This document shows, in pieces, positions 31,234-45,303 of a stretch of 64,000 nt of DNA. The stretch is from the IMG/VR virus record IMGVR_UViG_3300023174_002543, positions 124,001-188,000 of that record. One strand, 5' to 3'. Under the pieces are notes generated by a model. It was given only the letters and a program-made list of their open reading frames with translations, was not told the DNA's origin and did not search any database. Position 1 is the first letter of the stretch, and each line of letters begins with the position of its first letter. The position numbers and the translations under genes were made by a program.

Positions 31234-31307
31234 TGGCGTATAGTGTAATGGTAACACCACAGACTTTGACTCTGTTATTCTAGGTTCGAGTCCTAGTACG
31301 CCTGCCA
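31234..31307 (+). tRNA. tRNA-Gln(TTG)
   Basis: Cloverleaf; ACAGA-ctTTGac-TCTGT; GGTTCGA; CCA. Confidence 0.93.
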
Positions 31308-31312
31308 AATTT

Positions 31313-31387
31313 GGGCTGTTAGTGATAATGGGAGCACGGGGGCTTTGCACGTCCTAGGTAAGAGTTCGATTCTCTTACGGTCCACCA
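31313..31387 (+). tRNA. tRNA-Ala(TGC)
   Basis: G3.U70 identity pair; loop ttTGCac; CCA. Confidence 0.9.
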
Positions 31388-31485
31388 AACATTCTCCCTT
31401 GCATATGGAGTACAATGTGATAAGTTATATGCAGTCTACAGACCTCTGCTTTCCTGGTTGTGCAGCAAACAATCAGGCCTAATTT

Positions 31486-31562
31486 GCGACCATAGTTCAT
31501 TTGGATAGAATACAACGCTACGAACGTTGGGGTGGGAGGTTCGAATCCTTCTGGTCGCACCA
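31486..31562 (+). tRNA. tRNA-Arg(ACG)
   Basis: CAACG-ctACGaa-CGTTG; CCA. Confidence 0.93.
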
Positions 31563-31563
31563 T

Positions 31564-31637
31564 GCTCTCATAGTATAAAGGCATTACACTACATTGGTAA
31601 TGTAGAAACACTGGATCGTTACCAGTTGGGAGCACCA
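31564..31637 (+). tRNA. tRNA-Thr(GGT)
   Basis: CTACA-ttGGTaa-TGTAG; T-loop GATCGTT variant; CCA. Confidence 0.9.
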
Positions 31638-31705
31638 TTATAGAAACATACTCTAACTTTATTGTGACACGTGGGTTCATCCATGAAGTATGTTTCTATA
31701 ATGGT
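31634..31705 (+). ncRNA. Clamp hairpin pairing tRNA-Thr ACCA with the 5' end of the next tRNA
   Basis: Perfect 19-bp inverted repeat ACCATTATAGAAACATACT/AGTATGTTTCTATAATGGT. Confidence 0.7.
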
Positions 31706-31778
31706 TGAGTAGCATAGTGGCTAATGCACCACCTTCATACGGTGTTTATCGTCGGTTCGAGTCCGACCTCAACTACCA
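31703..31778 (+). tRNA. tRNA-Met(CAT), probably elongator
   Basis: Loop ttCATac; cloverleaf; CCA. Confidence 0.85.
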
Positions 31779-31780
31779 GA

Positions 31781-31936
31781 TTTCTGAGATAGACGATAGG
31801 TTTGAGTCCCTGCCAATCTAGCCACAGTGTGGTGTACTGTGGTAACACTACAGTATGATTGAAGCCGGTTAGTTAAACTTGCCTATACGAGACAATCATG
31901 TGAGTCCTCCCAGGAGGATAGTGTGGCTCTCAGAAA
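31781..31936 (+). ncRNA. Candidate multi-branch ncRNA
   Basis: Closing TTTCTGAGA/TCTCAGAAA; inner AGCCACA/TGTGGCT, TACTGT..ACAGTA, ATGATTG/CAATCAT, TCCT/AGGA. Confidence 0.55.
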
Positions 31937-31944
31937 CCTATATA

Positions 31945-32019
31945 GGGTCTTTGGTGAAATGGATATCATCTCGGTCTTCGAAACCGAGGGTGGGAGTTCG
32001 ATCCTCTCAAGACCCGCCA
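31945..32019 (+). tRNA. tRNA-Arg(TCG)
   Basis: TCGGT-ctTCGaa-ACCGA; CCA. Confidence 0.92.
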
Positions 32020-32032
32020 ACAAGGAGTTATT

Positions 32033-32386
32033 ATGGATTTTACTTTAGATGAATCTTGTATTTGTGATGTACAAATTAAAGAAGTATATAGTGTATTCAA
32101 AGGTAGAAATCCTGATAGTCTTACACCAGATGAGTTGATGAGGATACTTAAAGGTACAGATAAGATGACAAGTGTGTTTTCTAAGGATCATCCAGAATTT
32201 AATAGATTTAGAGAACAGTTAGGTGTTGAAGGTTACATAAGAATAGAACGTGGTTGGTGGAATGGTGATAGAGTGTTAAAGCCATTTACATTGAACGGTG
32301 TGAAATTTATAGTAGGTGACCAGTTTTCTTCAGCATGTGCAATGAAACATCACCTAGAGTTTGCAAGAAAATATAACCGAGTATAG
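32033..32386 (+). CDS. Hypothetical protein inside the tRNA array
   Basis: AAGGAG RBS; last codons overlap the tRNA-Pro 5' end. Confidence 0.75.
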   Translation: MDFTLDESCICDVQIKEVYSVFKGRNPDSLTPDELMRILKGTDKMTSVFSKDHPEFNRFREQLGVEGYIRIERGWWNGDRVLKPFTLNGVKFIVGDQFSSACAMKHHLEFARKYNRV

Positions 32387-32452
32387 CGTAATCAGGTAGC
32401 GTTCATGGTTTGGGACCATGCGGTCAAGGTTCAAATCCTTGTACTCGGACCA
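32377..32452 (+). tRNA. tRNA-Pro(TGG)
   Basis: CATGG-ttTGGga-CCATG; CCA. Confidence 0.92.
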
Positions 32453-32457
32453 ATTTA

Positions 32458-32549
32458 GGAAAGTAATGCAGGTGGGATGGTCCGCCGACGAGCCTTGAAA
32501 ACTCGGTTCTCAGAAATGGGATGGGGTTCGACTCCTCTGCTTTCCGCCA
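32458..32549 (+). tRNA. tRNA-Ser(TGA) with 8/4 acceptor/T-stem structure
   Basis: GGAAAGTA/TGCTTTCC 8 bp; GGGG/CCTC 4-bp T-stem; long V-arm; G73; CCA. Confidence 0.85.
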
Positions 32550-32558
32550 ATAACATAT

Positions 32559-32634
32559 GGTGTTGGTAGCTCAATGGTAGAGCCCTGGATTGTGATTCCA
32601 GTTGTTGCGAGTTCGAGTCTCGTCCTTCACCCCA
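32559..32634 (+). tRNA. tRNA-His(GTG) with encoded G-1
   Basis: CTGGA-ttGTGat-TCCAG; G-1:C73; CCA. Confidence 0.92.
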
Positions 32635-32643
32635 ATTTTAAAT

Positions 32644-32735
32644 GCCAGCGAGACTTGGTAGTCAGAGAGGTCTTATACACCTTTTAGCGCCAGATTAGCG
32701 TTCTTGAGTGAGTTCGATTCTCACCGCTGGTACCA
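32644..32735 (+). tRNA. tRNA with TAT anticodon (Ile, AUA reader), long variable arm, minimal D-loop
   Basis: GCCAGCG/CGCTGGT; GACT-tggt-AGTC; AGGT-ctTATac-ACCT; long V-arm; CCA. Confidence 0.8.
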
Positions 32736-32739
32736 ATAT

Positions 32740-32803
<64 letters not shown>

Positions 32804-32815
<12 letters not shown>

Positions 32816-33001
32816 TTCAGGATTCAAAATGAATTCGGCTTTTTCAAGTACAGGATCAGGTATATATTCTTGTATATCAAGTTTAGGATCAGGTACAAAT
32901 GTAGTACTAGTAGTCCATGATGAAGTTGGTTTATATGGCTCATTACTAAAACGATATAGTATATCGTAATTGTTAAGAGTTTTTTCAAATGAACGTGCCA
33001 T
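32804..33001 (-). CDS. Small antisense hypothetical protein within the tRNA array
   Basis: TATAAATA on the minus strand 5 nt upstream of the ATG; internal PDP.L repeat. Confidence 0.55.
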
Positions 33002-33013
33002 AACATTATTTAT

Positions 33014-33090
33014 ACCCCAGTGACGTAATTGGCAAACGTGTCTCTCTCAAAAGGAGAATTCTGCAGGTTCAAATCCTGCCTGGGGTACCA
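33014..33090 (+). tRNA. tRNA-Leu(CAA) with short variable loop
   Basis: TCTCT-ctCAAaa-GGAGA; 5-nt V-loop; CCA. Confidence 0.88.
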
Positions 33091-33136
33091 ATCGTGTTAA
33101 ATAATATTAGTGACAACAACATAGAAGGAGAAAGTA

Positions 33137-33697
33137 ATGTCTGTTTTAGCACTAGATGTGTCAGGAGTTCCAAGACAATGGATCTCTAAAGATGACGCAA
33201 TCACCTATCATGCCAAAAATGCAGTAGCATGGGCACTAGGTGAAGTTGTAGCAAAGTATCGCGGTGGATTTCAAAAGTCCGGCGAGATGAGTTACATTGA
33301 ATCACAAAGTATAATTGCTATTAAAGGACATGGCTTCAATCCATATAAACATTCAACCGTTGCATTAACAAACAGAACATTGTTTGGTCGTGACCGGCAT
33401 GTGTGTGCATATTGTGGAGTACATTATCCGAACTATCATAATCTAAGTAGGGACCACATTGTCCCTAAATTTTTAGGTGGTGAAAACACTTGGATGAATG
33501 TGGTTACTGCTTGCCGTGAATGTAATAGCAAGAAAGGTCATAAGACATTGAAAGAATCACGTATGGAATTACTGTATGTGCCTTATGCACCTAATCACTA
33601 TGAAAACATGATACTGCAACAACGTAACATACTTGCGGATCAAATGGAATATCTGTTAGCAGGTGTCCCAAAACATAGTAGAATCTTACTATCGTAG
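33137..33697 (+). CDS. HNH endonuclease-domain protein
   Basis: RD.H.CAYCG, SRDHIVPK..GG.N.W.NVVTAC..CN.KK; AAGGAG RBS. Confidence 0.9.
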   Translation: MSVLALDVSGVPRQWISKDDAITYHAKNAVAWALGEVVAKYRGGFQKSGEMSYIESQSIIAIKGHGFNPYKHSTVALTNRTLFGRDRHVCAYCGVHYPNYHNLSRDHIVPKFLGGENTWMNVVTACRECNSKKGHKTLKESRMELLYVPYAPNHYENMILQQRNILADQMEYLLAGVPKHSRILLS

Positions 33698-33704
33698 AAG
33701 GATT

Positions 33705-33745
33705 TCACCGAGATGGTTGACAATAAATTATCTCGGTGATACAAT
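33705..33745 (+). promoter_or_regulatory. Sigma70 promoter with a 10-bp inverted repeat flanking the -35
   Basis: TTGACA(33717)-17-TACAAT; TCACCGAGAT/ATCTCGGTGA. Confidence 0.75.
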
Positions 33746-33764
33746 ACACATTAAATAAAAAGAC

Positions 33765-33839
33765 GCCGACTTAGCACAGTGGTAGTGCAATCGCCTTGTA
33801 AGCGATAGGTCATCAGTTCGAATCCGATAGTCGGCACCA
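33765..33839 (+). tRNA. tRNA-Thr(TGT)
   Basis: ATCGC-ctTGTaa-GCGAT; CCA. Confidence 0.92.
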
Positions 33840-33846
33840 AATTTAT

Positions 33847-33922
33847 TCCTCGATAGCTCAGTTGGTAGAGTGCCGGACTGTTAATCCGTTGGTCCCTGGT
33901 TCGAGCCCAGGTCGAGGAGCCA
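33847..33922 (+). tRNA. tRNA-Asn(GTT)
   Basis: CGGA-ctGTTaa-TCCG; CCA. Confidence 0.94.
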
Positions 33923-33941
33923 ATTACTCAATGGAGAAATT

Positions 33942-34136
33942 ATGTTAGTTAGTGAAAACGCAGGTTATAAATTGTATTGTGAAGTTCGCAAACTTGATAT
34001 ACATCCTCAGGATAATCATGTCCGAATCTATACAACTTATGATTGGGCTAAGAACCCAGATGCTGAACAAAATAAATTAGAGTTATTCCTTAGTGATAAT
34101 GAATTAGAGGTACTTAGACAATCATTGACTGCTTAA
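33942..34136 (+). CDS. Hypothetical protein
   Basis: GGAG RBS; 64 aa. Confidence 0.7.
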   Translation: MLVSENAGYKLYCEVRKLDIHPQDNHVRIYTTYDWAKNPDAEQNKLELFLSDNELEVLRQSLTA

Positions 34137-34723
34137 TTGTTTTGTATAAACAATTGCCAGTCTTCAAAGCTATAGTGATAGTTTTCCAAAACTTCTAACA
34201 TCTTATCAAACACTAGTAATGTTCGTTTGTGACCAGCAAGTTCAGTTTGTACTTGTGTTATTTTTGTTTCAACAATAGATTTTAGAAAATTATCACCCTC
34301 ATCTTGTTTCAATTTAATTTTTTTACTGATAATGGTTAATTTTCTTATGAGTTCATTGCACATGCCAATACCCTTGGTTGTATTACGTTGTGCTTCATAA
34401 ATATCAACTTTCATCTTTAATATTAAATCATCAAGTTCAGGGTTGATTTGCTGAGTAAAATGATTTATCATATTAGAAAGTCTATTTTTGACTTCATTGC
34501 TGATATTAGTGTCCTCATAATAATTGCCGGTACTATCATAATGCTGGCGTTTTATAGGATCAATTAGTGTTTCATACGCTTCTTTGATTCGTATGAATTT
34601 TTTTTCATCACCCCCTTTGTCGGGATGATTGATTTGAGCAAGCGTTCTATATTTTTGTTTGATTTCTTCAAAGGTACAATTTTTTGGTAATTCTAATTCA
34701 TCATAAAGGGTATTGGTATCCAT
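34133..34723 (-). CDS. DnaJ-domain (J-domain) protein
   Basis: LYDELEL...IKQKYR.LAQINHPDKGGD...IKEAYETL.DP..R..YD; TAAATA 4 nt upstream. Confidence 0.9.
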   Translation of the reverse strand: MDTNTLYDELELPKNCTFEEIKQKYRTLAQINHPDKGGDEKKFIRIKEAYETLIDPIKRQHYDSTGNYYEDTNISNEVKNRLSNMINHFTQQINPELDDLILKMKVDIYEAQRNTTKGIGMCNELIRKLTIISKKIKLKQDEGDNFLKSIVETKITQVQTELAGHKRTLLVFDKMLEVLENYHYSFEDWQLFIQNN

Positions 34724-34734
34724 AACATATTTAT

Positions 34735-34809
34735 CTGGCGTTCGTTCAACGGATAGGACATCATTCTTCTAAAGTGATTATAGTGGTTCGATTCCACTAC
34801 GCCGGACCA
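34735..34809 (+). tRNA. tRNA-Arg(TCT)
   Basis: TCATT-ctTCTaa-AGTGA; CCA. Confidence 0.92.
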
Positions 34810-34823
34810 ATCATAAATAATTC

Positions 34824-35528
34824 ATGCGAACAACATCCCAAATAGAAAAGATTAAGTCTGATATAATTCAACCTTATGTAGTTGATAACTTTCTTACGGA
34901 TGATGAAGTTCAATATCTTATTAATATATTTGAGTCCAGAGACTTAGAACCTGCTAAAGTGTATAAGAATACAGGCCCAACAACATTAGATATATTAGAG
35001 ATAATGGATGATAGTGTTATACAAAATGTATTAACAAAAGTAAAAAATGAAATAGGTGATTTTGCACTTACTGCAGGGTTATTTTTCTATACAAATTATC
35101 CACACATAATTCACAACGATGACACGTTTGAATTACCTGATAGTGTGTATAGAGCAATAACTATCCCATTGAAACTATATGGGAATGGTAATGGTTATCC
35201 TAGACTTTGTATGTTTGACCAGTTTTATTTTCATGGTCCTGCAAAGTTCTTTAAAGGTGAAACACACATTGATTCATTCTTTAATAAATGTCTTTATGAT
35301 TATAAAGATGTAGATGGAATAGTAGATACACCGATCAATGATACTGAAAATTTATTAACTCATCTAAAGCCAGAATGGTTAGATGGGTTAAGCATTCATT
35401 CTACCTTTGAATGGAAACCAACTAGTGCAATAATATTTGACAGTGTTAGATTACATAGTGCAAGTGACTTTAGGTCATTGGGCTATAATTTTAAGTTGGG
35501 TCTTAGTATCTTTACAAAACATGGTTGA
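34824..35528 (+). CDS. 2OG-Fe(II) dioxygenase-like protein
   Basis: IIHND (HxD), IIFDS.RLH.ASDF. Confidence 0.6.
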   Translation: MRTTSQIEKIKSDIIQPYVVDNFLTDDEVQYLINIFESRDLEPAKVYKNTGPTTLDILEIMDDSVIQNVLTKVKNEIGDFALTAGLFFYTNYPHIIHNDDTFELPDSVYRAITIPLKLYGNGNGYPRLCMFDQFYFHGPAKFFKGETHIDSFFNKCLYDYKDVDGIVDTPINDTENLLTHLKPEWLDGLSIHSTFEWKPTSAIIFDSVRLHSASDFRSLGYNFKLGLSIFTKHG

Positions 35529-36027
35529 ATACTTTAAAAAACTTGATATTGTTTTACCTGACTTAGATTTCAATGATATGAATTCGGGTGAAGTATTACA
35601 TAATCCTAGAGGATTAGACTTTACTTATTATAAGATTAAGGAAGAATATATACCTTCATTGACTCTCACATTACCAGTAGAGTATAGAGATAAAGTTTCT
35701 TTAATCGTTTATGTTATAGTAGGTGGACCTTATGTATTTCTTCCACATAGAGATAAAGCAGGTAAAACTGCAATTAACTATTATATAAAAACAGGACCTA
35801 GTGAAACTTCATTTTATGAAGCCAAAACTGAAAACCCTAGATATGTAGTTATTGATGGTGAAGAGTATGAGGGATGGTTTGATTATGATGACATTACTAA
35901 GGTAGCAAGTTTTCAAGCAAACACCAATGACTGTTATAAGTTGTCTATTGGCTCTATGCACGATTTGAAATTATACACAGAAGAAAAAAGACACTTCATA
36001 CAATTTATATTTGAAGAAGAACTATGA
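35521..36027 (+). CDS. 2OG-Fe(II) dioxygenase-like protein
   Basis: LPHRD...TAINYY...MHD..RHFIQ. Start moved to the ATG at 35521. Confidence 0.55.
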   Translation: MVEYFKKLDIVLPDLDFNDMNSGEVLHNPRGLDFTYYKIKEEYIPSLTLTLPVEYRDKVSLIVYVIVGGPYVFLPHRDKAGKTAINYYIKTGPSETSFYEAKTENPRYVVIDGEEYEGWFDYDDITKVASFQANTNDCYKLSIGSMHDLKLYTEEKRHFIQFIFEEEL

Positions 36028-36683
36028 ACATTGGGTTTTACGGTCATAGCAATTGTGCATACAGGTCACCGGATAGTTTTTTAGATTTGGTTGCAACACA
36101 TTACAATGGTAAAGTTGTAAACAAGGGATGCAAACAGGGCAGTGAAGAACGTATTCTATTTGAATTAAAGAAAACAAAACATATAGATGTTGCAGTAATT
36201 TTTCACTGCCATCATAATGCATTATTCATTCCCAATAGTGATAGAGATGTACATGCGATAGATGTAACATATAATCGGGCAACTGATTTGTTTCGTACAA
36301 CTCATTTAGATACTGAGTTTGAAAAAGAGAACAGCCCAAAGTTTATCAATTTGTTTAAGAATGATGATAACCTATTGAATGTTATTGATACATATAAGAA
36401 TTATCTATATCATCAGGATCTAGAACTAAACAGATATTACGGTGCTTTAATGCAAATTGACCAATATCTAGCATATAAGAAAATTAAAGCAATTCACGTA
36501 ATAGATAAACGTTGTGCCATACCATTATGGTTCAAGTTTAATGGTTATGTGGATGATACCATAATGCAAATTTGTGAACAAGAGTTGGCAAAAAACCCTT
36601 TCTTTGTGAATTGTGTCAGTAAACACGGTAATGTGTTGATTGCTGATAAAATTATTCAAATAATTGAATCGTATAAATACTAA
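36024..36683 (+). CDS. Hypothetical protein, SGNH-like
   Basis: FYGHSNC, NKGCKQGSEERI; C-terminal GN.LIA. Confidence 0.5.
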   Translation: MNIGFYGHSNCAYRSPDSFLDLVATHYNGKVVNKGCKQGSEERILFELKKTKHIDVAVIFHCHHNALFIPNSDRDVHAIDVTYNRATDLFRTTHLDTEFEKENSPKFINLFKNDDNLLNVIDTYKNYLYHQDLELNRYYGALMQIDQYLAYKKIKAIHVIDKRCAIPLWFKFNGYVDDTIMQICEQELAKNPFFVNCVSKHGNVLIADKIIQIIESYKY

Positions 36684-36684
36684 T

Positions 36685-36758
36685 GCGGTTTGTGGTAGAG
36701 CGGTCTTACGCCTGCGTGAAACACAGGAGACGGAGGTTCGAATCCCCCGGCCGCCCCA
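36685..36758 (+). tRNA. Atypical tRNA-like element (apparent GAA anticodon, C73)
   Basis: T-arm GGAGG-TTCGAAT-CCCCC and CCA end, but irregular acceptor and anticodon arm (G32, C31.A39). Confidence 0.5.
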
Positions 36759-36780
36759 AAAACATGAATTGTGAATAATT

Positions 36781-37203
36781 ATGACTAACTATAAAATATT
36801 TGAATATACCTATGATAAAGATAGTTTATTATCTTTGTATAATTCATTAAAAGATGAAGGTAAATCTAAAGTTGAGTTATGCTTTAATACAGCAGATTTA
36901 ACTGACGTACCGCATGATATCCTCCCTAATATGGATATCTATGAAAGAACATTGGCTATCGGAGAATATGGATTGGCAGAATTATTATCCGATACCGGAT
37001 ATCATGTTAATCCAGGCAATAATGGATTAATAATTTTCCCAGTGTCTGGTGTAATTAATTTTACATTTGAAGATGGAACTAGTATTGATATTACTCAACC
37101 TACATATACAAACGGTAAAGTAAGTCATACATACAGTCCAAAAGACGGTTCTGCTGTTTTCTTTGCTATTAAGATTCCATCTGATGTAGCATGGGAGGAT
37201 TAA
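36781..37203 (+). CDS. Hypothetical protein (degenerate cupin/2OG-like)
   Basis: GYHVN..NNGLIIFPV...HTY. Confidence 0.5.
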   Translation: MTNYKIFEYTYDKDSLLSLYNSLKDEGKSKVELCFNTADLTDVPHDILPNMDIYERTLAIGEYGLAELLSDTGYHVNPGNNGLIIFPVSGVINFTFEDGTSIDITQPTYTNGKVSHTYSPKDGSAVFFAIKIPSDVAWED

Positions 37204-37709
37204 TATTCTACCCGAATATTGATTTTGATTATTCTTACTTAACTCAATTAGTATACACATCAAAACCAATAGAAGGTAGACCCAATCATCATAGATTGGT
37301 AGCAGACGATAATTATCTAGTAAGTATCAGGGAAAGATATAATTTTCTTAGCCCGATATACAATGTGTATGTAATGCCAGATGGGCTACCGGTGCATACA
37401 GACGCCGGAAGAAAATGCACACTAAACATTCCCTTAGTTAATTGTAAAGATACAATAACTATAGTTTACCAATCAATAGATACTGAAACAGTATATGATA
37501 GTAGCAAAGTGGTAAACAAACTTAATTTAACAGAAAATCTAACAGAATTGTATAGATTTGAATTAGATAGACCTATGTTATTCAATACTACTTATCCACA
37601 TGAAGTAGTTACTAATGGTAAAGAAAGAATTTCTATTAGTTGGAGTCTTATGCCAGAGATAACATTTGACGAGGCTGTAGCACTTTTTAATGAGTGTGAG
37701 CAAGACTAG
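37191..37709 (+). CDS. 2OG-Fe(II) dioxygenase-like protein
   Basis: LPVHTD.GR.C.LNIPL...LFNT.YPHEV...RISISW. Confidence 0.65.
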   Translation: MGGLIFYPNIDFDYSYLTQLVYTSKPIEGRPNHHRLVADDNYLVSIRERYNFLSPIYNVYVMPDGLPVHTDAGRKCTLNIPLVNCKDTITIVYQSIDTETVYDSSKVVNKLNLTENLTELYRFELDRPMLFNTTYPHEVVTNGKERISISWSLMPEITFDEAVALFNECEQD

Positions 37710-38382
37710 CAATTACCTTTTTTACATTTGCTGTAGTAAAAGGTATATTAAGAATTAAATGGTGACTGTCGTTAACCCAACTAATGGTGCGATGTGTCAT
37801 ACGTGTGTTAACATAATATAGTTGACCTTGTTGTATATTCATCTTTTTGTCGTCCATTAACCAATCATATTGTAATGGGCCGCAATTGTTTAAAAATGCA
37901 ACTAGCCTAAAACATTCACGTGGCATACTTGGTGCATCACGGTGAGGAACAAAATATCCACCTATGTCACTACGTATAATCATAGAGCGACCAAGAGGTT
38001 GCCATTGTTCCAATACCGAATGTAAACTAGGACAACGATTATATACATCGGTTGGTGTGTTGAATTCTAATTCACTTAATTGACGACCGGCAGCATAACT
38101 TGCTTCGGCAAGGCTTGTATTTTCTTTGTGAGATTTACCGGGCAATGCCATTAATGTCATTGCTTTACGATTGTTGGGTCTATCTGTGCGAGGCAAATAA
38201 TTTACCCAATCATTGTCAAATTGACTAATCTCTTGCATATACTTGCCTGTGTCAATATACATGTTAAGTGGCTCAAAGTTACCTAAGTTAAGTAATGCTA
38301 ATTCATTAGCCATTATTTCGTGTGTAACATTAGTCGGGTCATATTCTTGGGGTCTGCCGCTGATTCCTGGTGGTACAAGCAT
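37687..38382 (-). CDS. Asp/Asn beta-hydroxylase-like 2OG-Fe(II) dioxygenase
   Basis: GGYFVPHRD, YYVNTRMTHRTISW...HLILN. Confidence 0.7.
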   Translation of the reverse strand: MLVPPGISGRPQEYDPTNVTHEIMANELALLNLGNFEPLNMYIDTGKYMQEISQFDNDWVNYLPRTDRPNNRKAMTLMALPGKSHKENTSLAEASYAAGRQLSELEFNTPTDVYNRCPSLHSVLEQWQPLGRSMIIRSDIGGYFVPHRDAPSMPRECFRLVAFLNNCGPLQYDWLMDDKKMNIQQGQLYYVNTRMTHRTISWVNDSHHLILNIPFTTANVKKVIASLAHTH

Positions 38383-38393
38383 TATAATGTTCT

Positions 38394-39050
38394 TTAAATA
38401 TAAGTTATCATTTGATCCATTGTAGGTCTTCTGTTCCTTGTATGGATATTTCTAATTGAAGAATCTAGATTTTTCAGGTCAAACCCAATTTCTATACCGT
38501 CTTTATAAACTTTAGAAATTGGATAATCACTGTGGTCACTGGTTGCGTAACCAAATCCAAGAGTGATGATAGCACTATGTTCTGGTTTGTTTAATCTGTC
38601 AGCAATTTCTCTGCCACCTATACAACCACAAAATCCAGTGCTAACACCTAATTCTTCGGCTTGACACATTGCCATAGTAGCACTAACTATGCAATCATTG
38701 TTAGTACGAAGGAATTCGTTTTCGGTATATGAATTCATTGGTTGATTGAATTGTTTGCCTAGCCAAATCATTACAATGGGTGCAGCCATTTGACCATTAT
38801 ATCTACGTAAACCAGGACCTTGCTTGGCTCTAATCATATCCAAGCAACTAGTATCTTCGTAGTATAACCATTGTTTAAACTCTTTGCCAGCAGGACTATC
38901 AGTAAGCACTATAATTTCATAGTCATAGTGACCTTGTTTGCTTGGTGCAAGATATGCACATTCAAGGATAGCATTAATTTTTTCGTTTTCTACAGTTTGG
39001 TCATTCCACCATTTTGCTGTATAACGGGTTCGCAAATAATCTAATAACAT
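38394..39050 (-). CDS. Nitroreductase-family protein
   Basis: RTRYTAKWW...ILECAYLAPSKQG; MCQAEELGVSTGFCG. Start moved to the ATG at 39050, 5 nt after TATAAATA. Confidence 0.8.
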   Translation of the reverse strand: MLLDYLRTRYTAKWWNDQTVENEKINAILECAYLAPSKQGHYDYEIIVLTDSPAGKEFKQWLYYEDTSCLDMIRAKQGPGLRRYNGQMAAPIVMIWLGKQFNQPMNSYTENEFLRTNNDCIVSATMAMCQAEELGVSTGFCGCIGGREIADRLNKPEHSAIITLGFGYATSDHSDYPISKVYKDGIEIGFDLKNLDSSIRNIHTRNRRPTMDQMITYI

Positions 39051-39091
39051 AGAAATATTTATACGTTTAAATGCCCATGAGAAACAATTAG

Positions 39092-39246
39092 TGTTGTTTT
39101 TTTGCAACAAACAGTTTGACAAGATATCCAACTTAGTATATAATTCATTTATGAATTGAGAAATTGATTCGCTGGGTGAATTGAAGAATTTGTTGTAATA
39201 ATACAACACAAAAAGATTTGACAATAAATCCAATTAGATGTATAAT
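39092..39246 (+). promoter_or_regulatory. Tandem duplicated sigma70 promoters, each preceded by TGTTG-N8-CAACA
   Basis: TTGACA 39116/TATAAT 39139 and TTGACA 39218/TATAAT 39241. Confidence 0.8.
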
Positions 39247-39296
39247 ACATTTAATGAGTTGAGAAATCAACATGTTCTTTAAAAAGTTAATTTTTC

Positions 39297-39559
39297 ATAT
39301 AGCCCTGTTTAAGTTACAGGGACTATATGCAAACACATTGGGTTACCTTCCCAGTAGGTAACTTAGATAGTGAGTAACCAGTTGACGGACTGGCACTTCT
39401 GAGTTACACGAAACCTTGAGACTATTAGTTATAGTAGTCAGGAGGACGCTGGAACAAGTTGGCACGTAATGTGGTTGACAAACAAGTCCGTGGACGGCAC
39501 GGTAGGGCAGGATCAAAACTGTTATTTTTGTCAAACACCCCAATGTCTTTTCATATAGT
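39297..39559 (+). ncRNA. Candidate multi-branch ncRNA closed by a clamp stem
   Basis: 18/20-bp stem 39322-39341/39540-39559; competing 5' hairpin 39297-39328; several inner hairpins. Confidence 0.6.
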
Positions 39560-39560
39560 G

Positions 39561-39689
39561 TGTTATTAGTTCTATCCTCTGTAAGCACAGAGGCAAACTA
39601 GATGCGTTATGTAACCTATCCGATAAACAGTAATCGGCCGTAAAGCTGTTGAGGGTAGGCAAATAGTGCAGTGGATAGAACTAATAATA
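39561..39689 (+). ncRNA. Candidate ncRNA with H-type pseudoknot
   Basis: Perfect 15-bp closing stem 39563-39577/39673-39687; CCGAT/ATCGG hairpin whose loop AACAG pairs with CTGTT. Confidence 0.6.
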
Positions 39690-39692
39690 TTT

Positions 39693-39769
39693 GCACCGTT
39701 AGCGCAGTTGGTTAGCGCACCGCCCTGTCACGGCGGGGGTCAGGGGTTCGAGTCCCCTACGGTGCGCCA
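39693..39769 (+). tRNA. tRNA-Asp(GTC)
   Basis: CCGCC-ctGTCac-GGCGG; CCA. Confidence 0.95.
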
Positions 39770-39776
39770 AGTTTTT

Positions 39777-39852
39777 GCTGGGTTCGTCTATCGGTTTAGG
39801 ACACATGCCTTTCACGTATGTAAGACGGGTTCGATTCCCGTACCCAGTACCA
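39777..39852 (+). tRNA. tRNA-Glu(TTC)
   Basis: CATGC-ctTTCac-GTATG; CCA. Confidence 0.93.
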
Positions 39853-39858
39853 AGTTTT

Positions 39859-39943
39859 GGAGATGTAGGAAAATTGGTAACCCCAGGAGACTGTAAATCT
39901 TCCGCCTCTGGCACTGTTGGTTCAACTCCAACCGTCTCCACCA
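39859..39943 (+). tRNA. tRNA-Tyr(GTA)
   Basis: AGA-ctGTAaa-TCT; long V-arm; CCA. Confidence 0.92.
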
Positions 39944-39964
39944 GAAACATGTTAGTAAAGAATT

Positions 39965-40825
39965 TGGGGGCATAGCCTCTTTAAGATAAGTCACGTGAGT
40001 GACCCAAAGCAGTATCCTCCTACAGGACTGCGCCAGTAATGGTCTATCTATGCAAGCCTGCTCTCACCCGCGAGGGTGCGTTCACTGATAAGACCGGTGG
40101 ATGTAACAGTAAAGCAAGTGTGTTGGAAAGAATGTCTGTTTATGTTCCCGTGAGGGTAAGACAGGCGGACAGAGAGTAACAGGTGGTGCTGACCTCAACA
40201 CAAAACCAACTTGTCAATTGGTAAGAGAAAGGGTAGTGTATTGATTCGAAGGGTCGCTCCTAAGAGTTCGTATGCAGTTTGAGTGTTTGATGGATATGTA
40301 GTAATACATATACATTGGTCGCAAAAAACTACTGATTACTCCGCGAGAGGAAAGGTACGTGGCGTGTTGTATTTTGTAGTCCAAAAGATTATGAAGCAAC
40401 TGAGACAGCACATCACAGTAGGTTGTTATAGGCTAATGGTAGGCCGATTTCCTTTTAAGAAATAGACTGTTGGTTCAACTCCAACTAACATTATAAAAAC
40501 GCAAAGTCTGTCTCGGTGGTATGTGAAAAACATCTAATACTTGAGTGGCAACACAATCAAGTCTGACGTAACTCGCAAGGTGAAATCAGTTTATGCAGGA
40601 AGTATCGTAACTACTTAGCGGTAGTGAATGGCTCTAAAGGTCAACGGTGTAGAAAGCGTAGAATAGCATATCATGTCAAGTCTAATGCCTGACTTAAAAC
40701 GGCGATGTTGGTAACAGACTAGGATATGTAGTAATACAGTCTTAGTGGAAATCAGAAGAAAGTAGGCTCGCAAGGCTTACAATAATGTCTGAGGTGTTAC
40801 TCGGTAAGCATGTATTCTCAGTGCT
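39965..40825 (+). ncRNA. Large ornate ncRNA, GOLLD-like (about 860 nt); boundaries approximate
   Basis: Long non-coding stretch inside the tRNA array with many GNRA-capped hairpins (ccc-GCGA-ggg, ccc-GTGA-ggg, gctc-GCAA-ggc, atatgta-GTAA-tacatat). Size and context match GOLLD; not tested against Rfam. Confidence 0.6.
40422..40493 (+). tRNA. CCA-less tRNA-Lys(TTT) embedded in the large ncRNA
   Basis: GGCT-aatggta-GGCC D-arm; ATTTC-ctTTTaa-GAAAT; GTTGG-ttcaact-CCAAC; weak acceptor; no CCA. Confidence 0.75.
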
Positions 40826-40829
40826 CCAC

Positions 40830-40930
40830 TTTATATAAAAACATACTGGACGCCACACAACGGCGGTCTAGCGTCAACTAGGCGATGTTACGTTTGACGA
40901 TGTAACAGATTTAGTGTGTTTCTATATAAA
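40830..40930 (+). ncRNA. Clamp element enclosing three hairpins (four-way junction)
   Basis: 17/18-bp stem 40830-40847/40913-40930; inner GACGCC/GGCGGTC, CTAG/CTAG, TGTTAC/GTAACA. Confidence 0.6.
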
Positions 40931-40934
40931 GGTT

Positions 40935-41147
40935 TTGTAAGTGTCAGCAAGAGAATGTCACGCTATAAAAGTTTCTTCGAAGGACTGATATAGTAAAAGG
41001 GGACGGGTTCAACTCCCGGTGGATCGGAAGATCCGCGCAGATTGGTTGCTAACTGGACTAGTATCCCAAGTGACGTACCGAGTCCTGGCCCGGGCTTTAT
41101 GCAAATCAGGTGAATGGTGTCAATAACGATGGTGGCACAACTTACAA
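40935..41147 (+). ncRNA. Candidate structured ncRNA (about 210 nt)
   Basis: Closing TTGTAAG-TGTC/GGCAC-aa-CTTACAA; T-loop-like GGG-TTCAACT-CCC; GGATC-ggaa-GATCC. Confidence 0.55.
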
Positions 41148-41156
41148 ATTTAATAT

Positions 41157-41244
41157 GGAGTATTGGCCGACCGGTTAAGGCAACGGATTGCTAATCCGTC
41201 GTTCAGAAATGGGCGAGTAGGTTCGATTCCTACATACTCCGCCA
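41157..41244 (+). tRNA. tRNA-Ser(GCT)
   Basis: ACGGA-ttGCTaa-TCCGT; long V-arm; CCA. Confidence 0.94.
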
Positions 41245-41266
41245 AAACGTTCCGTTGTCAACGGAT

Positions 41267-41504
41267 ACTCTGACCCAGAGGATGAGAAGTGATGTGACAA
41301 TCACGGGTGGTTCTGAAACGGAAAAGTTTCACACAGAAGCCATGATTGAACATGGATGTATGTGCGGTCTAACCAAACCGGCGTTAGCAATACGAGAACG
41401 GTCCCTGTCGGGAAGCGGGTGGAGGTCGTGCGTGATGTTGTCGTGGATTATTCGTCTAGTCCGATGATTGATGCGATATAATTACCGCCGAGGGATGTCA
41501 GAGC
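41267..41504 (+). ncRNA. Candidate structured ncRNA (about 240 nt)
   Basis: Closing CTCTGAC/GTCAGAG; inner GGTTCTG/CAGAAGCC, GAAAC/GTTTC, CGGT/ACCG, CGTT/AACG, TCCC/GGGA. Confidence 0.55.
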
Positions 41505-41512
41505 ATTTATAT

Positions 41513-41590
41513 GTAGGAGTGGCAGAGCGGCCCATTGCAACGGATTGCAAATCCGTAAAACCGTGAGTTCAAATCTCACCTCCTACTCCA
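41513..41590 (+). tRNA. tRNA-Cys(GCA)
   Basis: ACGGA-ttGCAaa-TCCGT; U73; CCA. Confidence 0.92.
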
Positions 41591-41609
41591 AATATTGAAA
41601 GGAAATGTA

Positions 41610-41990
41610 ATGTATTATGATTATGAATCGTCTGCTAAGTTAACAGACATGGTAGGTAAAGTGTTTACCTCAGTTAAAGAAACTGGTGATACTATGGTGT
41701 TTGAAAATGCAACTGACCGTTATGTTTTCTTTCACTCACAAGATTGTTGCGAATCAGTTAGCATCAATGATATAGTAGGTGATTTGTCTGACCTAGTAGG
41801 GGAACCTCTATTAGTGGCAGATGAAGTGTCTGGAGAAGCTCCGGTTGGATTTGAAGATGAATATCACGAATCAGTAACTTGGACATTTTACAAATTTGCT
41901 ACTCGCAAAGGGTATGTGGATGTACGATGGCTAGGTGAATCTAATGGGTACTATAGCGAAAGCGTAGACCTAGGTTACGAAAAAGTTTAA
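41610..41990 (+). CDS. Hypothetical protein
   Basis: GAAAGGA RBS; HSQDCCESV, WTFYKFAT.KG...RW.GESNGYYSE. Confidence 0.8.
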   Translation: MYYDYESSAKLTDMVGKVFTSVKETGDTMVFENATDRYVFFHSQDCCESVSINDIVGDLSDLVGEPLLVADEVSGEAPVGFEDEYHESVTWTFYKFATRKGYVDVRWLGESNGYYSESVDLGYEKV

Positions 41991-42004
41991 CAAAAGGAAA
42001 TGAC

Positions 42005-42061
42005 ATGAAACGAGGTAAGAAATAGTGTCATCATAGACTTCCGTAGGTCTATGATTGGCAC
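42005..42061 (+). other. Minigene MKRGKK-stop followed by a 14-bp hairpin
   Basis: AAAGGA RBS; ATG 42005; TAG 42023-42025; GTGTCA-TCATAGAC/GTCTATGA-t-TGGCAC. Confidence 0.45.
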
Positions 42062-42084
42062 GTAAAATCAATCATACGACTTAT

Positions 42085-42161
42085 GGAAGCATAACTCAAC
42101 TGGCTAGAGTATCGGACTTTTAATCCGAGAGTTGTGGGTTCGAGTCCCACTGCTTCTACCA
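42085..42161 (+). tRNA. tRNA-Lys(TTT)
   Basis: TCGGA-ctTTTaa-TCCGA; CCA. Confidence 0.94.
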
Positions 42162-42239
42162 TATAAGAACATACTGCCTTCTGGTGAGTAAGATAACAAT
42201 GCTTACAATAAAAGTCCAAGTAGTGTGTTCCTATATGGT
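42158..42239 (+). ncRNA. Clamp hairpin sequestering tRNA-Lys ACCA
   Basis: 17/18-bp ACCATATAAGAACATACT/AGTGTGTTCCTATATGGT. Confidence 0.65.
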
Positions 42240-42251
42240 ATAAATATTTTT

Positions 42252-42473
42252 ATGATAAATGAATTTAAATTTTTATTCACAAATAAAGAAGAATATCATC
42301 GTAGGTATGATATTTGCAAAAGTTGTGATAGGTTCAATAGCTTAACCAAGCAATGTAAAGAATGTAATTGCTTTATGCCAATGAAATGTAAGATAAGCAA
42401 TTTGCCCTGCCCCTTAGGCTATTGGGCTAATGCAATAGATGTATCTGAAACAGATAATTTAGAAACGTTATAA
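42252..42473 (+). CDS. Small Cys-rich metal-binding protein (DUF6171-like)
   Basis: R...CKSC......QCKECNCFM..K......CP...W; TATAAATA 5 nt upstream. Confidence 0.75.
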   Translation: MINEFKFLFTNKEEYHRRYDICKSCDRFNSLTKQCKECNCFMPMKCKISNLPCPLGYWANAIDVSETDNLETL

Positions 42474-42475
42474 AA

Positions 42476-42549
42476 GTCTCCTTGGTGTAACGGCAGCATG
42501 ATGGTCTCCAAAACCATTCGTGGGGGTTCAAATCCCTCAGGGGACGCCA
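42476..42549 (+). tRNA. tRNA-Trp(CCA)
   Basis: ATGGT-ctCCAaa-ACCAT; CCA. Confidence 0.93.
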
Positions 42550-42551
42550 AA

Positions 42552-42752
42552 TTATTTTCTAAACTCAAGTTCCTTGAGTTTTTTGATTACTAAATCAAAA
42601 GTATGTGAATCATTTAATGATAGACTAGCAATTAGGGCAAGAAGGATACCCTGTTCATACAACAGTTGTTGTTCTCTTGTATTAAAATTCTTTTTATTAG
42701 AAATATATACAAGATGTTCTCGCAGGCGTTCTGCTATTTTTAATGGATCCAT
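42552..42752 (-). CDS. Small antisense hypothetical protein within the tRNA array
   Basis: Minus-strand TATAAATA 4 nt upstream of the ATG. Confidence 0.65.
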   Translation of the reverse strand: MDPLKIAERLREHLVYISNKKNFNTREQQLLYEQGILLALIASLSLNDSHTFDLVIKKLKELEFRK

Positions 42753-42765
42753 ATATTATTTATAA

Positions 42766-42842
42766 GCCTCAATAGCTCATTTGGTTAGAGCACCGTCTTG
42801 ATAAGGCGGGGGTGCCTAGTTCGAATCTAGGTTGAGGCACCA
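42766..42842 (+). tRNA. tRNA-Ile(GAT)
   Basis: CCGTC-ttGATaa-GGCGG; CCA. Confidence 0.94.
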
Positions 42843-42848
42843 GAATAT

Positions 42849-42877
42849 TTGACAAGTACTAACTAGTGCTATATAAT
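42849..42877 (+). promoter_or_regulatory. Sigma70 promoter
   Basis: TTGACA-17-TATAAT. Confidence 0.8.
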
Positions 42878-42888
42878 AGAGACATGTT

Positions 42889-42965
<77 letters not shown>

Positions 42966-42982
42966 CCTAATAAGAAAGTATC

Positions 42983-43399
42983 ATGGATTTAACAAAAGAA
43001 GACGGCGACAAACGCAATAGTTTACCTTATCCAATGGAGTTAGGTAGTCCTGCATTTGCACCCATCGATGTTAAAAAAGAAAGTGATGTGTTATACAATG
43101 CTGGCAAATTACATGCCAAGCAAGAGTATGATAGAATCATGGAACAAGTAGAAGTTCTAAGACGCCAAGCAGAAAGTTTGGAGCATAGAATGCAAGTAAG
43201 TGACATGATGCATAATATTACTATTACCTTTAAGCCGGTGCATGGTAAGATTTATTATGTGTATTTGGATACACTTAAAAATAAACACTGGCTTTCACTG
43301 AACCATCCTAATAGTTGGTCAGCACTAGGTATACATCATAAATTTGTAGTTGCTGTCCAACTAATGGGTGATAGTAATTGGCAAAAAGTAGAAATTTAA
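42983..43399 (+). CDS. DUF2452-like hypothetical protein
   Basis: PYP.ELGSPAF; coiled coil AKQEYDRI.EQ; FKPVHGKIYYVY. Confidence 0.7.
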   Translation: MDLTKEDGDKRNSLPYPMELGSPAFAPIDVKKESDVLYNAGKLHAKQEYDRIMEQVEVLRRQAESLEHRMQVSDMMHNITITFKPVHGKIYYVYLDTLKNKHWLSLNHPNSWSALGIHHKFVVAVQLMGDSNWQKVEI

Positions 43400-43400
43400 T

Positions 43401-43474
43401 GCGGGGTTAGTTTAATGGTAAAACAGCAGATTTCCAATCTTCGGTCGAGAGTTCGATTCTCTCACTCCGCTCCA
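43401..43474 (+). tRNA. tRNA-Gly(TCC)
   Basis: Loop ttTCCaa; U73; CCA. Confidence 0.9.
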
Positions 43475-43670
43475 ATCAATAGGAATATTATTTATGAATA
43501 TGAAAATTACATACGACAATCCTGATAACTTACAAGAAGACAGTACTCCTATACCGGAGGACGCTAAAAAAGGTCTTGCAATTCCATTTCATGTTCAGAT
43601 TGGACTACAAGAATCAATACCGGTATCAATAAGTACTACTCAAGTTCCAATAGAACCAAGTGAGAAATAG

Positions 43671-43910
43671 TTGACAGACTACATAACAACATTTTTTGCA
43701 ATCTTTTTACTTGATATTGTTTACACATACTACTTAAGATGTGTGGCAAATGATAACGTGTTAGGTGCAAGTTTTTGGAGTGTAGCCTGTTATATCTTAG
43801 GAAGTGTGGCAGTTATAAATTACACAACCAATCATTGGTTAATGATTCCAGCAATGGCTGGTGCGTTTTGTGGCACCTTTATTGGAATGAAGATTAGAAA
43901 GAAAGATTGA
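43671..43910 (+). CDS. Small membrane protein
   Basis: Three hydrophobic segments; TTG start. Confidence 0.65.
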   Translation: MTDYITTFFAIFLLDIVYTYYLRCVANDNVLGASFWSVACYILGSVAVINYTTNHWLMIPAMAGAFCGTFIGMKIRKKD

Positions 43911-43912
43911 TT

Positions 43913-43996
43913 GCCCCGGTGGTGGAATGGTAGACACGTTGGTCTTAGAAGCCAATGTCGAAAGGCGTGCGAGTTCGAGTCTCGCCTGGGGCACCA
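43913..43996 (+). tRNA. tRNA-Leu(TAG)
   Basis: TTGGT-ctTAGaa-GCCAA; long V-arm; CCA. Confidence 0.94.
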
Positions 43997-44000
43997 AATT

Positions 44001-44084
44001 GCGAGAGTGGTGGAATGGTATACACAGCAGACTTAAAATCTGCCGCCGAAGGGCTTACGGGTTCGAGTCCCGTCTCTCGTACCA
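44001..44084 (+). tRNA. tRNA-Leu(TAA)
   Basis: GCAGA-ctTAAaa-TCTGC; long V-arm; CCA. Confidence 0.94.
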
Positions 44085-44189
44085 TTATAGAGTACAGGCT
44101 CTTTATAAATCCTGTCTTTGCGTGGAACCGAGCAACGCTACTGCTTGTATAAGCATCGGTTCATATTACTACTATAGATAAATAGTAGT

Positions 44190-44366
44190 ATGAAATTCAA
44201 TATATTCATCAATAATAAACTATATAAAACAGTTACCGTTCAGGGCGACACTTTTAATCCTACTTCAATTTGGCCTCAAATTGAAGCCGATAAAAAATCC
44301 GGACTATTAAGTAGTTACAATGTCAGCGAACAACTGTCTATCAAAGTAGAAAAAGTCAAAAATTAA
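44190..44366 (+). CDS. Small hypothetical protein, 58 aa (not in ORF track)
   Basis: TAAATA 5 nt upstream; MKFNIFINNKLYKTV. Confidence 0.55.
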   Translation: MKFNIFINNKLYKTVTVQGDTFNPTSIWPQIEADKKSGLLSSYNVSEQLSIKVEKVKN

Positions 44367-44369
44367 TCT

Positions 44370-44444
44370 ACATGATTAACTCAGTGGTAGAGTCCTGTCC
44401 TGACTCGACAGTGGTCAATAGTTCGAATCTATTATCATGTACCA
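44370..44444 (+). tRNA. tRNA-Val(GAC) with unusual U37
   Basis: CTGTC-ctGACtc-GACAG; ACATGAT/ATCATGT; CCA. Confidence 0.85.
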
Positions 44445-44494
44445 AAACACTTGCAAGTATTTTAAATCAGTGCTATACTTGCGTATAAATATTT

Positions 44495-44569
44495 CGTGGG
44501 GTGGAGAAGTAGTATCTCACTAGTCTCATAAGCTAGAGAACGGCGGTGCGATTCCGTCCCCCGCAACCA
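44495..44569 (+). tRNA. Initiator-like tRNA-Met(CAT)
   Basis: C1.A72 mismatch; loop ctCATaa; lacks the three G-C anticodon-stem pairs; CCA. Confidence 0.75.
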
Positions 44570-44587
44570 AACAACTAAAGGAAAATA

Positions 44588-44857
44588 ATGAAAGTAAGAG
44601 CAAGACATATTTTAGTACCGACGCTTAATGAAGCAGTTGAAGTCTTTAACAAGATTAAAGAAGGTGAAGATTTTGGTGCTGTAGCACGTAAAATGTCAAA
44701 GTGTCCTAGTGGTCAAAATGGTGGCGACTTGGGTGAGTTTGGTCACGGTCAAATGGTTAAGCCTTTTGAAGATGCCTCATTCGGGTTAGAGGTAGGTCAA
44801 CTGAGCGAACCTGTTCAAACACAGTTCGGTTATCATTTAATTCAACGTACAGGATAA
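44588..44857 (+). CDS. ppiC: Parvulin-type peptidyl-prolyl cis-trans isomerase
   Basis: ARHILV, SKCPSGQNGGDLGEF..GQMVKPFEDA, PVQTQFGYHLI. Confidence 0.95.
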   Translation: MKVRARHILVPTLNEAVEVFNKIKEGEDFGAVARKMSKCPSGQNGGDLGEFGHGQMVKPFEDASFGLEVGQLSEPVQTQFGYHLIQRTG

Positions 44858-44859
44858 TT

Positions 44860-45021: not shown

Positions 45022-45041
45022 TATTTCTTAGAAAGATTATC

Positions 45042-45226: not shown

Positions 45227-45227
45227 C

Positions 45228-45303
45228 GCATCCTTAACTCAGTTGGTAGAGTGTCGCCTTTACACGGCGAATGTCGGCGGTTCGAGCCCGTCAGGATGTA
45301 CCA
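45228..45303 (+). tRNA. tRNA-Val(TAC)
   Basis: TCGCC-ttTACac-GGCGA; CCA. Confidence 0.94.

Follow-up and report, generated by a model that had tools for sequence, protein, structure and literature searches.

The question raised by this locus is whether a phage-encoded tRNA that combines a UAU anticodon with a long extra arm is a genuine tRNA and, if it is, what it contributes to the reading of AUA codons. The initial annotation, made from the sequence alone, had described this gene together with a tRNA-Arg(UCG), alongside the normal tRNA-Ile2(CAU) and tRNA-Arg(ACG). It proposed that the two tRNAs bypass host modification enzymes at codons common in this AT-rich genome, and that the long arm might cause the UAU tRNA to be charged with Leu or Ser. 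We analyzed a window of 64,000 nucleotides corresponding to bases 124001-188000 of the IMG/VR virus record IMGVR_UViG_3300023174_002543. The whole record (367,104 bp, 36.5% G+C, estimated to be complete) represents a freshwater jumbo phage, and near-identical DNA occurs in freshwater and lake metagenomes. The observation itself was confirmed and turned out to be stronger than initially stated. The interpretation, in contrast, was only partly supported.

Initially, we identified tRNA genes in the window. ARAGORN found 33 of them, all on the + strand, between positions 31234 and 46028, including both tRNAs in question, which lie inside an array of 33-34 tRNA genes. Rfam at its curated thresholds recovered 32 of these genes and, in addition, a GOLLD RNA. 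The only ARAGORN prediction not recovered is the UAU tRNA: the gene does not reach the 29-bit gathering threshold of the general tRNA model (RF00005) and is also absent from the list of matches with E<=0.001 for the whole genome. Its best Rfam match is tRNA-Sec (RF01852), scoring 32.6 bits against a cut-off of 47 bits. Weak Rfam matches to YrlA in the same region span the T arm of one tRNA and the D arm of the next, and we treated them as artefacts of tandem tRNAs. The companion tRNAs mentioned in the initial annotation are also present. All features are listed in Table 1.

Table 1. Coordinates of the features discussed in the text (positions within the 64,000-nt window)
Feature	Position	Strand	Description	Support
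Five-arm tRNA(UAU)	32644-32735	+	92 nt, CCA encoded	ARAGORN; minimum-free-energy fold; covariation over 65 distinct homologues
Acceptor stem	32644-32650 with 32725-31	+	7 bp, G1.U72	As above
Linker	32651	+	A8, single base	As above
D stem	32652-55 with 32660-63	+	4 bp	As above; invariant, no covariation
D loop	32656-59	+	UGGU	As above
Base after D stem	32664	+	A	As above
Anticodon stem	32665-71 with 32679-85	+	7 bp	As above
Anticodon loop	32672-78	+	CUUAUAC	As above
Anticodon	32674-32676	+	UAU in a canonical loop (Y32 U33 U34 A35 U36 A37 N38)	UAU in every intact family member
Extra arm	32686-32702	+	Stem 32686-90 with 32698-702 (5 bp); loop CAGAUUA 32691-97 with invariant G-A-U at 32693-95; directly abuts the anticodon stem	Stem covaries (pairs 45:59 and 47:57)
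Connector	32703-32707	+	CUUGA, 5 nt between extra arm and T stem; last two bases, G-A, invariant	Alignment of 65 sequences
T stem	32708-12 with 32720-24	+	5 bp	As for the whole tRNA
Discriminator	32732	+	A73	As for the whole tRNA
CCA	32733-35	+		As for the whole tRNA
tRNA-Arg(UCG)	31945-32019	+	75 nt, canonical class I, G73, CCA encoded	ARAGORN; Rfam tRNA 58.1 bits
tRNA-Ser(UGA)-like gene, (8/4)	32458-32549	+	8-bp acceptor stem, 4-bp T stem, long arm, G73, CCA	tRNA-Sec model 31.1 bits; below Rfam thresholds; not called by ARAGORN
tRNA-Ile2(CAU)-type gene	42889-42965	+	TilS-dependent AUA decoder of the same array	G3, an Ile(CAU) discriminator (PMC1635315); best E. coli match annotated tRNA-Ile, 88% identity
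tRNA-Ile(GAU)	42766-42842	+	Canonical AUU/AUC decoder	ARAGORN; Rfam
tRNA-Arg(ACG)	31486-31562	+	Needs host TadA to form inosine at position 34	ARAGORN; Rfam
CAU tRNA, initiator-like	44495-44569	+	C1xA72	
CAU tRNA, elongator Met-like	31703-31778	+		
Weak YrlA match	32684-32792			Rfam
Weak YrlA match	32499-32617			Rfam

The failure of the general tRNA model might suggest a prediction artefact or a decaying pseudogene, and two related contigs do carry truncated copies. To address this possibility, we asked whether the predicted structure is conserved. The minimum-free-energy fold (-30.9 kcal/mol, z = -2.84) consists of five helices, because a second hairpin immediately follows the anticodon arm. 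In an alignment of 65 distinct homologues this structure pairs in 99.6% of cells, and 17 of 28 pairs show changes on both sides. None of 500 shuffles reached any of the observed values, and shifted registers drop to about 42% pairing. Every helix is supported by covariation except the D stem, which never varies. A73 is present in all 65 sequences and G1.U72 in 61 of 65. The hallmarks of a canonical functional tRNA (a 7-bp acceptor stem, a 5-bp T stem with a TPsiC-type loop, GG in the D loop, a 7-nt anticodon loop with U33 and a purine at position 37, and a discriminator base) are all present and conserved, with CCA encoded here and in 30 of 67 distinct copies. The artefact or pseudogene explanation is thus contradicted by covariation and strict conservation across at least 160 contigs from very different phages, and we consider it all but excluded.

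We next explored how widely this tRNA is distributed. A megablast search of isolated phages with the tRNA array gave only generic tRNA hits. However, a blastn search of isolated phages with the tRNA found homologues in three cultured species: Sinorhizobium phage Phosso, where the gene is annotated as tRNA-Ile(tat), and Synechococcus phages S-SRM01 and S-SKS1, where it is not annotated. We then performed three pattern scans of IMG/VR, each constraining different parts of the molecule. The resulting counts are lower bounds. The scan that constrained the D arm and the extra-arm loop but left the anticodon free gave 105 distinct sequences, all with UAU. In the scan that constrained the D arm and UAU but left the extra arm free, 126 of 131 hits kept GAUUAG in the extra-arm loop, 3 had GAUCAG and 2 were truncated copies; no intact natural variant lacked the extra arm. 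In the scan that constrained only the extra-arm loop and the T arm, 150 of 150 hits had UAU, and the D loop was N-G-G-N. Altogether, the family is found on more than 160 viral contigs. In contrast, the same motif occurs in only 5 of 185,579 bacterial species genomes (Aquiluna twice, Haliscomenobacter, Nostoc twice). All five are metagenome-derived or draft assemblies, and these contigs may well be phage DNA.

The family splits into two subfamilies. One encodes CCA and has a 5-bp extra arm; it includes the gene in the window, Phosso and other large-phage contigs. The other, the cyanophage type, lacks CCA and has a 4-bp extra arm. In general, the stems drift freely, whereas three single-stranded elements are frozen: the anticodon loop Y-U-U-A-U-A-N, the D loop N-G-G-N and the extra-arm loop C-(A/C)-G-A-U-(U/C)-A (CCGAUUA in S-SKS1-type copies). 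The extra arm differs from the variable arms of the array's own Leu, Ser and Tyr tRNAs, which end in tetraloops and have different connectors. It starts without a spacer after the anticodon stem, ends in a conserved 7-nt loop and is followed by 5 nt, the length of a class I variable loop. The 4-nt D loop is likewise unlike those of the array's class II tRNAs. Therefore, the molecule can equally be described as a class I tRNA with two tandem anticodon-type arms, the second of which displays G-A-U, the anticodon of the major tRNA-Ile. The only variation in that second loop is at the positions equivalent to 33 and 37. While this is a direct reading of the sequences, what the arm does is a matter of inference.

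To find out what AUA means in these phages, we first examined codon usage (no alternative genetic code was applied). ATA is used 2481 times in 109,344 codons, that is, 22.7 per 1000 codons and 33% of Ile codons. We then compared the ORFs of this genome with roughly 1 Mb of related viral DNA, masking ATA as X in both query and subject so that the alignments could not be biased. ATA aligned to Ile in 29% of cases (plus 5% to ATA), to Leu in 15% and to Val in 14%. The corresponding values for ATT and ATC were 39-40%, 13-16% and 11-16%, while Leu codons aligned to Ile in about 10% (9-16%), to Leu in 45-55% and to Val in 5-9%. Ser was not among the main partners of ATA. In evolutionary terms, ATA is therefore an Ile codon.

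These results bear directly on the idea that LeuRS or SerRS, neither of which reads the anticodon, might recognize the long arm, so that AUA would be partly read as Leu or Ser. Several observations speak for this idea. A long extra arm together with A73 resembles Leu identity in some systems, nematode nev-tRNA(UAU) is charged only with Leu (PMC3333845), and allo-tRNAs are charged by SerRS whatever their anticodon (PMC7609411). However, the Ile to Leu ratio in ATA columns is about 1.9, as opposed to about 0.2 for Leu codons. A73 is invariant in all 65 intact distinct copies, whereas Ser tRNAs, including those of the array, have G73, so that the gene does not fit the criterion for Ser identity, G73 plus a long arm. 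The D arm is unlike that of tRNA-Leu. Since ATA makes up 2.3% of all codons, a Ser-inserting tRNA would be highly damaging and is very unlikely. A Leu-inserting one is disfavored but not excluded. Overall, we regard mischarging as improbable.

Which functions depend on the host was assessed by searching the phage genome for the relevant enzymes. It has no match to the class I synthetase family that includes IleRS (the Ile/Leu/Val/Met family) and none to the TilS PP-loop family. Its single deaminase-fold ORF (G000:199297-199815, G000 denoting the phage genome) is dCMP-deaminase/ComEB-like and scores 26 bits against a 150-bit cut-off for TadA. Any charging must therefore come from host enzymes. 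The tRNA-Ile2(CAU) and tRNA-Arg(ACG) do depend on host TilS and TadA, as the initial annotation assumed, and a U34 tRNA would remove the dependence on TilS. A modification-independent reading is thus reasonable for the UAU tRNA.

The same reading is unnecessary for tRNA-Arg(UCG). CGA (2.5 per 1000) is rare and CGG (0.5 per 1000) is even rarer, so that the claim of codons common in this genome does not hold for this tRNA. It is better explained as part of a complete set. The array has a U34 tRNA in every four-codon box (Ala, Gly, Pro, Thr, Val, Ser, Leu-CUN and Arg-CGN) and, by standard wobble rules, covers all 61 sense codons; in the absence of a CCG tRNA, UCG is what covers CGG. A blastn search of isolated phages with tRNA-Arg(UCG) gave no match. 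Nevertheless, 15 Arg(tcg) genes, against 19 Arg(acg), occur in the related viral loci, many with a compensatory C1-G72 in place of G1-C72. With a canonical cloverleaf, C35 and G36, tRNA-Arg(UCG) is an ordinary tRNA.

The initial annotation missed the family itself with its invariant extra-arm loop, as well as a second noncanonical tRNA next door, the (8/4) tRNA-Ser(UGA)-like gene. Homologues of the latter in Pseudomonas phage PHB09 and mycobacteriophages Bromden and LeBron show covarying stems, and this class has been described in phages (PMC5389517).

We then compared the five-arm tRNA with the closest known systems. Nematode nev-tRNA-Ile(UAU) (Hamashima et al. 2012, PMC3333845) also has a long extra arm and a UAU anticodon, coexists with normal Ile tRNAs and corresponds to the AUA codon. 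However, it is eukaryotic, derives from tRNA-Leu with a normal class II D arm and is charged with Leu in vitro, whereas ATA columns in these phages are Ile-like. Allo-tRNA(UAU) of Acidobacteria and soil metagenomes (Mukai et al. 2017, PMC5389517) shares the tRNA-Sec-like shape, the long arm, the UAU anticodon and possible five-stem junctions, and is likewise missed by standard tRNA finders. Yet allo-tRNAs have a 12-bp acceptor branch in an 8/4 or 9/3 configuration, while the present family is 7/5 by covariation, with position 8 an unpaired, near-invariant A; it is the neighboring Ser(UGA)-like gene that fits the 8/4 criterion. Moreover, allo-tRNA-UAU species often carry destabilizing mutations, lie near toxin-antitoxin genes and were inactive in E. 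coli translation, whereas this family is cleanly paired, sits in phage tRNA arrays and has A73. Mycoplasma mobile tRNA-Ile2(UAU) and the B. subtilis tilS-deletion suppressor (PMC3575796, PMC3919564) share TilS-independent AUA decoding through U34, but they are normal class I tRNAs, and M. mobile needed a co-adapted IleRS (Arg865) and ribosome. The phage tRNA would have to work with unadapted hosts of several phyla. Phage T4 tRNA-Ile is also an AUA decoder within a tRNA cluster, but it has a CAU anticodon and a class I shape and so depends on host TilS, resembling the CAU gene of the window rather than the UAU gene. Finally, tRNA-Sec shares the 4-nt UGGU D loop, the long arm and the lengthened anticodon stem, but has a UCA anticodon and an 8/5 (13-bp) acceptor/T branch. 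None of these systems matches the 7/5 configuration with a 1-nt linker, a 4-nt D loop and an abutting extra arm with an invariant loop. Literature searches, although they did not cover everything published, found no description of a long-armed phage tRNA(UAU), so the family is apparently undescribed.

Taken together, the best explanation is that the gene encodes a functional tRNA of a widespread family carried almost only by phages, made during infection as part of a self-sufficient tRNA set. In this view, it decodes AUA through an unmodified or lightly modified U34, without the TilS lysidinylation still required by the co-resident tRNA-Ile2(CAU), and is most probably charged with Ile by the host IleRS. 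The extra arm, with its freely covarying stem and fixed loop, would be a sequence-specific recognition module for a protein that may help charging or control U34 modification and AUG misreading. We assign this reading a probability of roughly 0.55. The existence of the gene, the conservation of its structure, the essentially phage-restricted distribution, the high frequency of ATA and its Ile-like evolutionary meaning follow from the data, whereas expression, the charged amino acid and the role of the extra arm are inferred. As to expression, short contigs from lake metatranscriptome libraries lie on relatives' copies, and one starts exactly at G1, but such assembled contigs can neither prove transcription nor map ends and are only weakly suggestive. 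As to Ile identity for bacterial IleRS, A73, A35, U36 and A37 (the t6A site) are invariant, position 38 is A in most copies and C here, and position 34 is U rather than G or lysidine. E. coli IleRS charges a UAU tRNA poorly, and an unmodified UAU tRNA misreads AUG on E. coli ribosomes (PMC3575796). Simple Ile decoding therefore needs an additional explanation. It also counts against this reading that the long-armed UAU tRNAs known elsewhere are either charged with Leu (nev-tRNA) or inactive in E. coli translation (allo-tRNA-UAU).

Genomic context complicates the picture further. In cyanophage-type contigs, the five-arm tRNA is followed within 5 nt by a CAU tRNA in 33 cases. The acceptor stem of the latter often carries C4-G69/C5-G68 or A3, signatures associated with tRNA-Ile(CAU), which suggests a co-transcribed AUA-decoding pair. 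However, a similarity search against E. coli tRNAs gave no match, and the Ile2 assignment rests on the acceptor-stem signatures alone. In addition, seven related loci carry a normal 73-75-nt tRNA(UAU) beside the five-arm one, which argues against plain redundancy. The five-arm design may solve the charging or misreading problem, or it may do something else. It could, for example, be a decoy or replacement for a host tRNA-targeting defense, a regulator, or a substrate or cofactor for another enzyme, with the UAU and GAU loops serving as recognition sites rather than decoding elements. Coexistence with other AUA decoders, the invariance of the extra-arm loop (typical of a protein-binding site) and the failure of allo-tRNA-UAU species in translation assays, for which other roles were proposed (PMC5389517), are in line with this possibility. 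On the other hand, the anticodon loop is perfectly canonical, A73 is conserved, CCA is encoded in about half the copies and the gene always sits inside tRNA arrays. We also clustered all ORFs in about 130 related loci in search of a partner enzyme. The top clusters were lineage-specific hypothetical proteins, a ferritin-like protein, a phosphatase and a weak Phd/YefM match, none of which spans the subfamilies. Similarly, the complement of the extra-arm loop is not enriched in the genome. A non-decoding or non-redundant role thus remains possible but is less likely than AUA decoding.

Within the decoding model, a more speculative and rather unlikely variant cannot be ruled out, namely, that the family represents a 'two-headed' tRNA. 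The canonical UAU arm would do the decoding, while the second hairpin, in the place and register of a class I anticodon arm, would display G-A-U in a loop made unfit for decoding (no U33, a pyrimidine at position 37). It would act as a built-in surrogate identity element, letting ordinary bacterial IleRS enzymes charge a U34 tRNA they would otherwise reject. Phages would thereby gain a portable, TilS-independent AUA decoder that works across host phyla.

Because the family is missed by Rfam's tRNA model and its copies in two reference cyanophage genomes are not annotated, phage tRNA inventories and codon-adaptation analyses may undercount it. A tRNA scaffold that tolerates, and probably uses, an additional sequence-specific arm is also of interest for tRNA engineering. 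AUA is the one sense codon that nearly all bacteria read only after an essential tRNA modification, lysidine made by TilS, and AT-rich phages infecting GC-richer hosts need many AUA decoders. A conserved, phage-only tRNA design that reads AUA with U34 would be a new natural answer to two problems: how IleRS can charge a UAU tRNA, and how AUG misreading is avoided.

We first considered the tRNA array as a whole. By wobble rules, its 33-34 tRNAs cover all 20 amino acids and all 61 sense codons. Interspersed among the tRNA genes are an HNH endonuclease ORF, a DnaJ-domain ORF on the opposite strand, and DUF7448 and DUF2452 ORFs. The array also contains a full-length GOLLD RNA (Rfam RF02032, 201 bits), within which a tRNA-Lys(UUU) lacking CCA is nested. 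The 'giant gene' mentioned in the initial annotation corresponds to an ORF of at least 4,802 aa that runs off the start of the window. Outside the window, the same phage genome (G000) encodes a 172-aa zinc deaminase ORF, which is dCMP-deaminase/ComEB-like rather than TadA. The coordinates of these and the other features considered here are collected in the table below.

Coordinates and strands of additional features in the window, in the phage genome (G000) and in related viral loci (L numbers)
Feature	Location	Coordinates	Strand
ORF of at least 4,802 aa	window	2-14410	+
tRNA array	window	31234-46028	
(8/4) tRNA with UGA anticodon	window	32458-32549	+
tRNA-His	window	32559-32634 (G-1 at 32559)	+
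Class I-shaped tRNA with CAA anticodon	window	33014-33090	+
HNH endonuclease ORF	window	33137-33697	
DnaJ-domain ORF	window	34133-34723	-
tRNA-like sequence	window	36685-36755	+
GOLLD RNA	window	40359-40824	+
tRNA-Lys(UUU) nested in GOLLD RNA	window	40422-40493	
Zinc deaminase ORF	G000:C1, outside the window	199297-199815	-
Five-arm tRNA(UAU) and CAU tRNA, example	L083	2050-2334	
Five-arm tRNA(UAU) and CAU tRNA, example	L003	1495-1660	
Truncated five-arm tRNA	L131	4410-4520 (approximate)	+
Truncated five-arm tRNA	L133	560-660 (approximate)	-

A second non-canonical tRNA is located between tRNA-Pro and tRNA-His. It has an 8-bp acceptor stem, a 4-bp T stem, a long arm, G73, CCA and the anticodon loop CUUGAAA (UGA, Ser). 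This gene is missed by ARAGORN and falls below Rfam thresholds, scoring 31.1 bits on the tRNA-Sec model. It matches the (8/4) tRNA-Ser class reported in phages (Mukai et al. 2017), and its unannotated homologues occur in Pseudomonas phage PHB09 and mycobacteriophages Bromden and LeBron. The tRNA-His has an encoded G-1 and two U.U mismatches in the acceptor stem, at 4:69 and 5:68. In addition, we observed an intergenic tRNA-like sequence with a good T arm but a degenerate anticodon arm. It scores 25.1 bits on the Rfam tRNA model, which is below threshold, and its fold is no better than that of shuffled sequence (z = 0.19). This sequence may represent a decayed tRNA.

In the related viral loci (for example, L083 and L003), the five-arm tRNA(UAU) of cyanophage-type contigs is fused within 5 nt to a CAU tRNA (33 cases). 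Seven loci additionally carry a normal 73-75-nt tRNA(UAU). Two loci (L131 and L133) contain truncated copies of the five-arm tRNA, in which the 5' half, through the UAU arm, runs directly into the neighbouring CAU tRNA with no extra arm or T arm. These copies are probably deletion remnants.

The array in the window includes a 77-nt class I-shaped tRNA that has the Leu anticodon CAA, A73 and a 5-nt variable loop. Short (about 75 nt) tRNAs with UAA or CAA anticodons are common in the related viral arrays (31 and 19 ARAGORN calls, respectively; loci L005-L134), where they occur alongside normal long-armed tRNA-Leu. Therefore, these phages carry Leu-anticodon tRNAs without the long arm as well as an Ile-anticodon tRNA with one.
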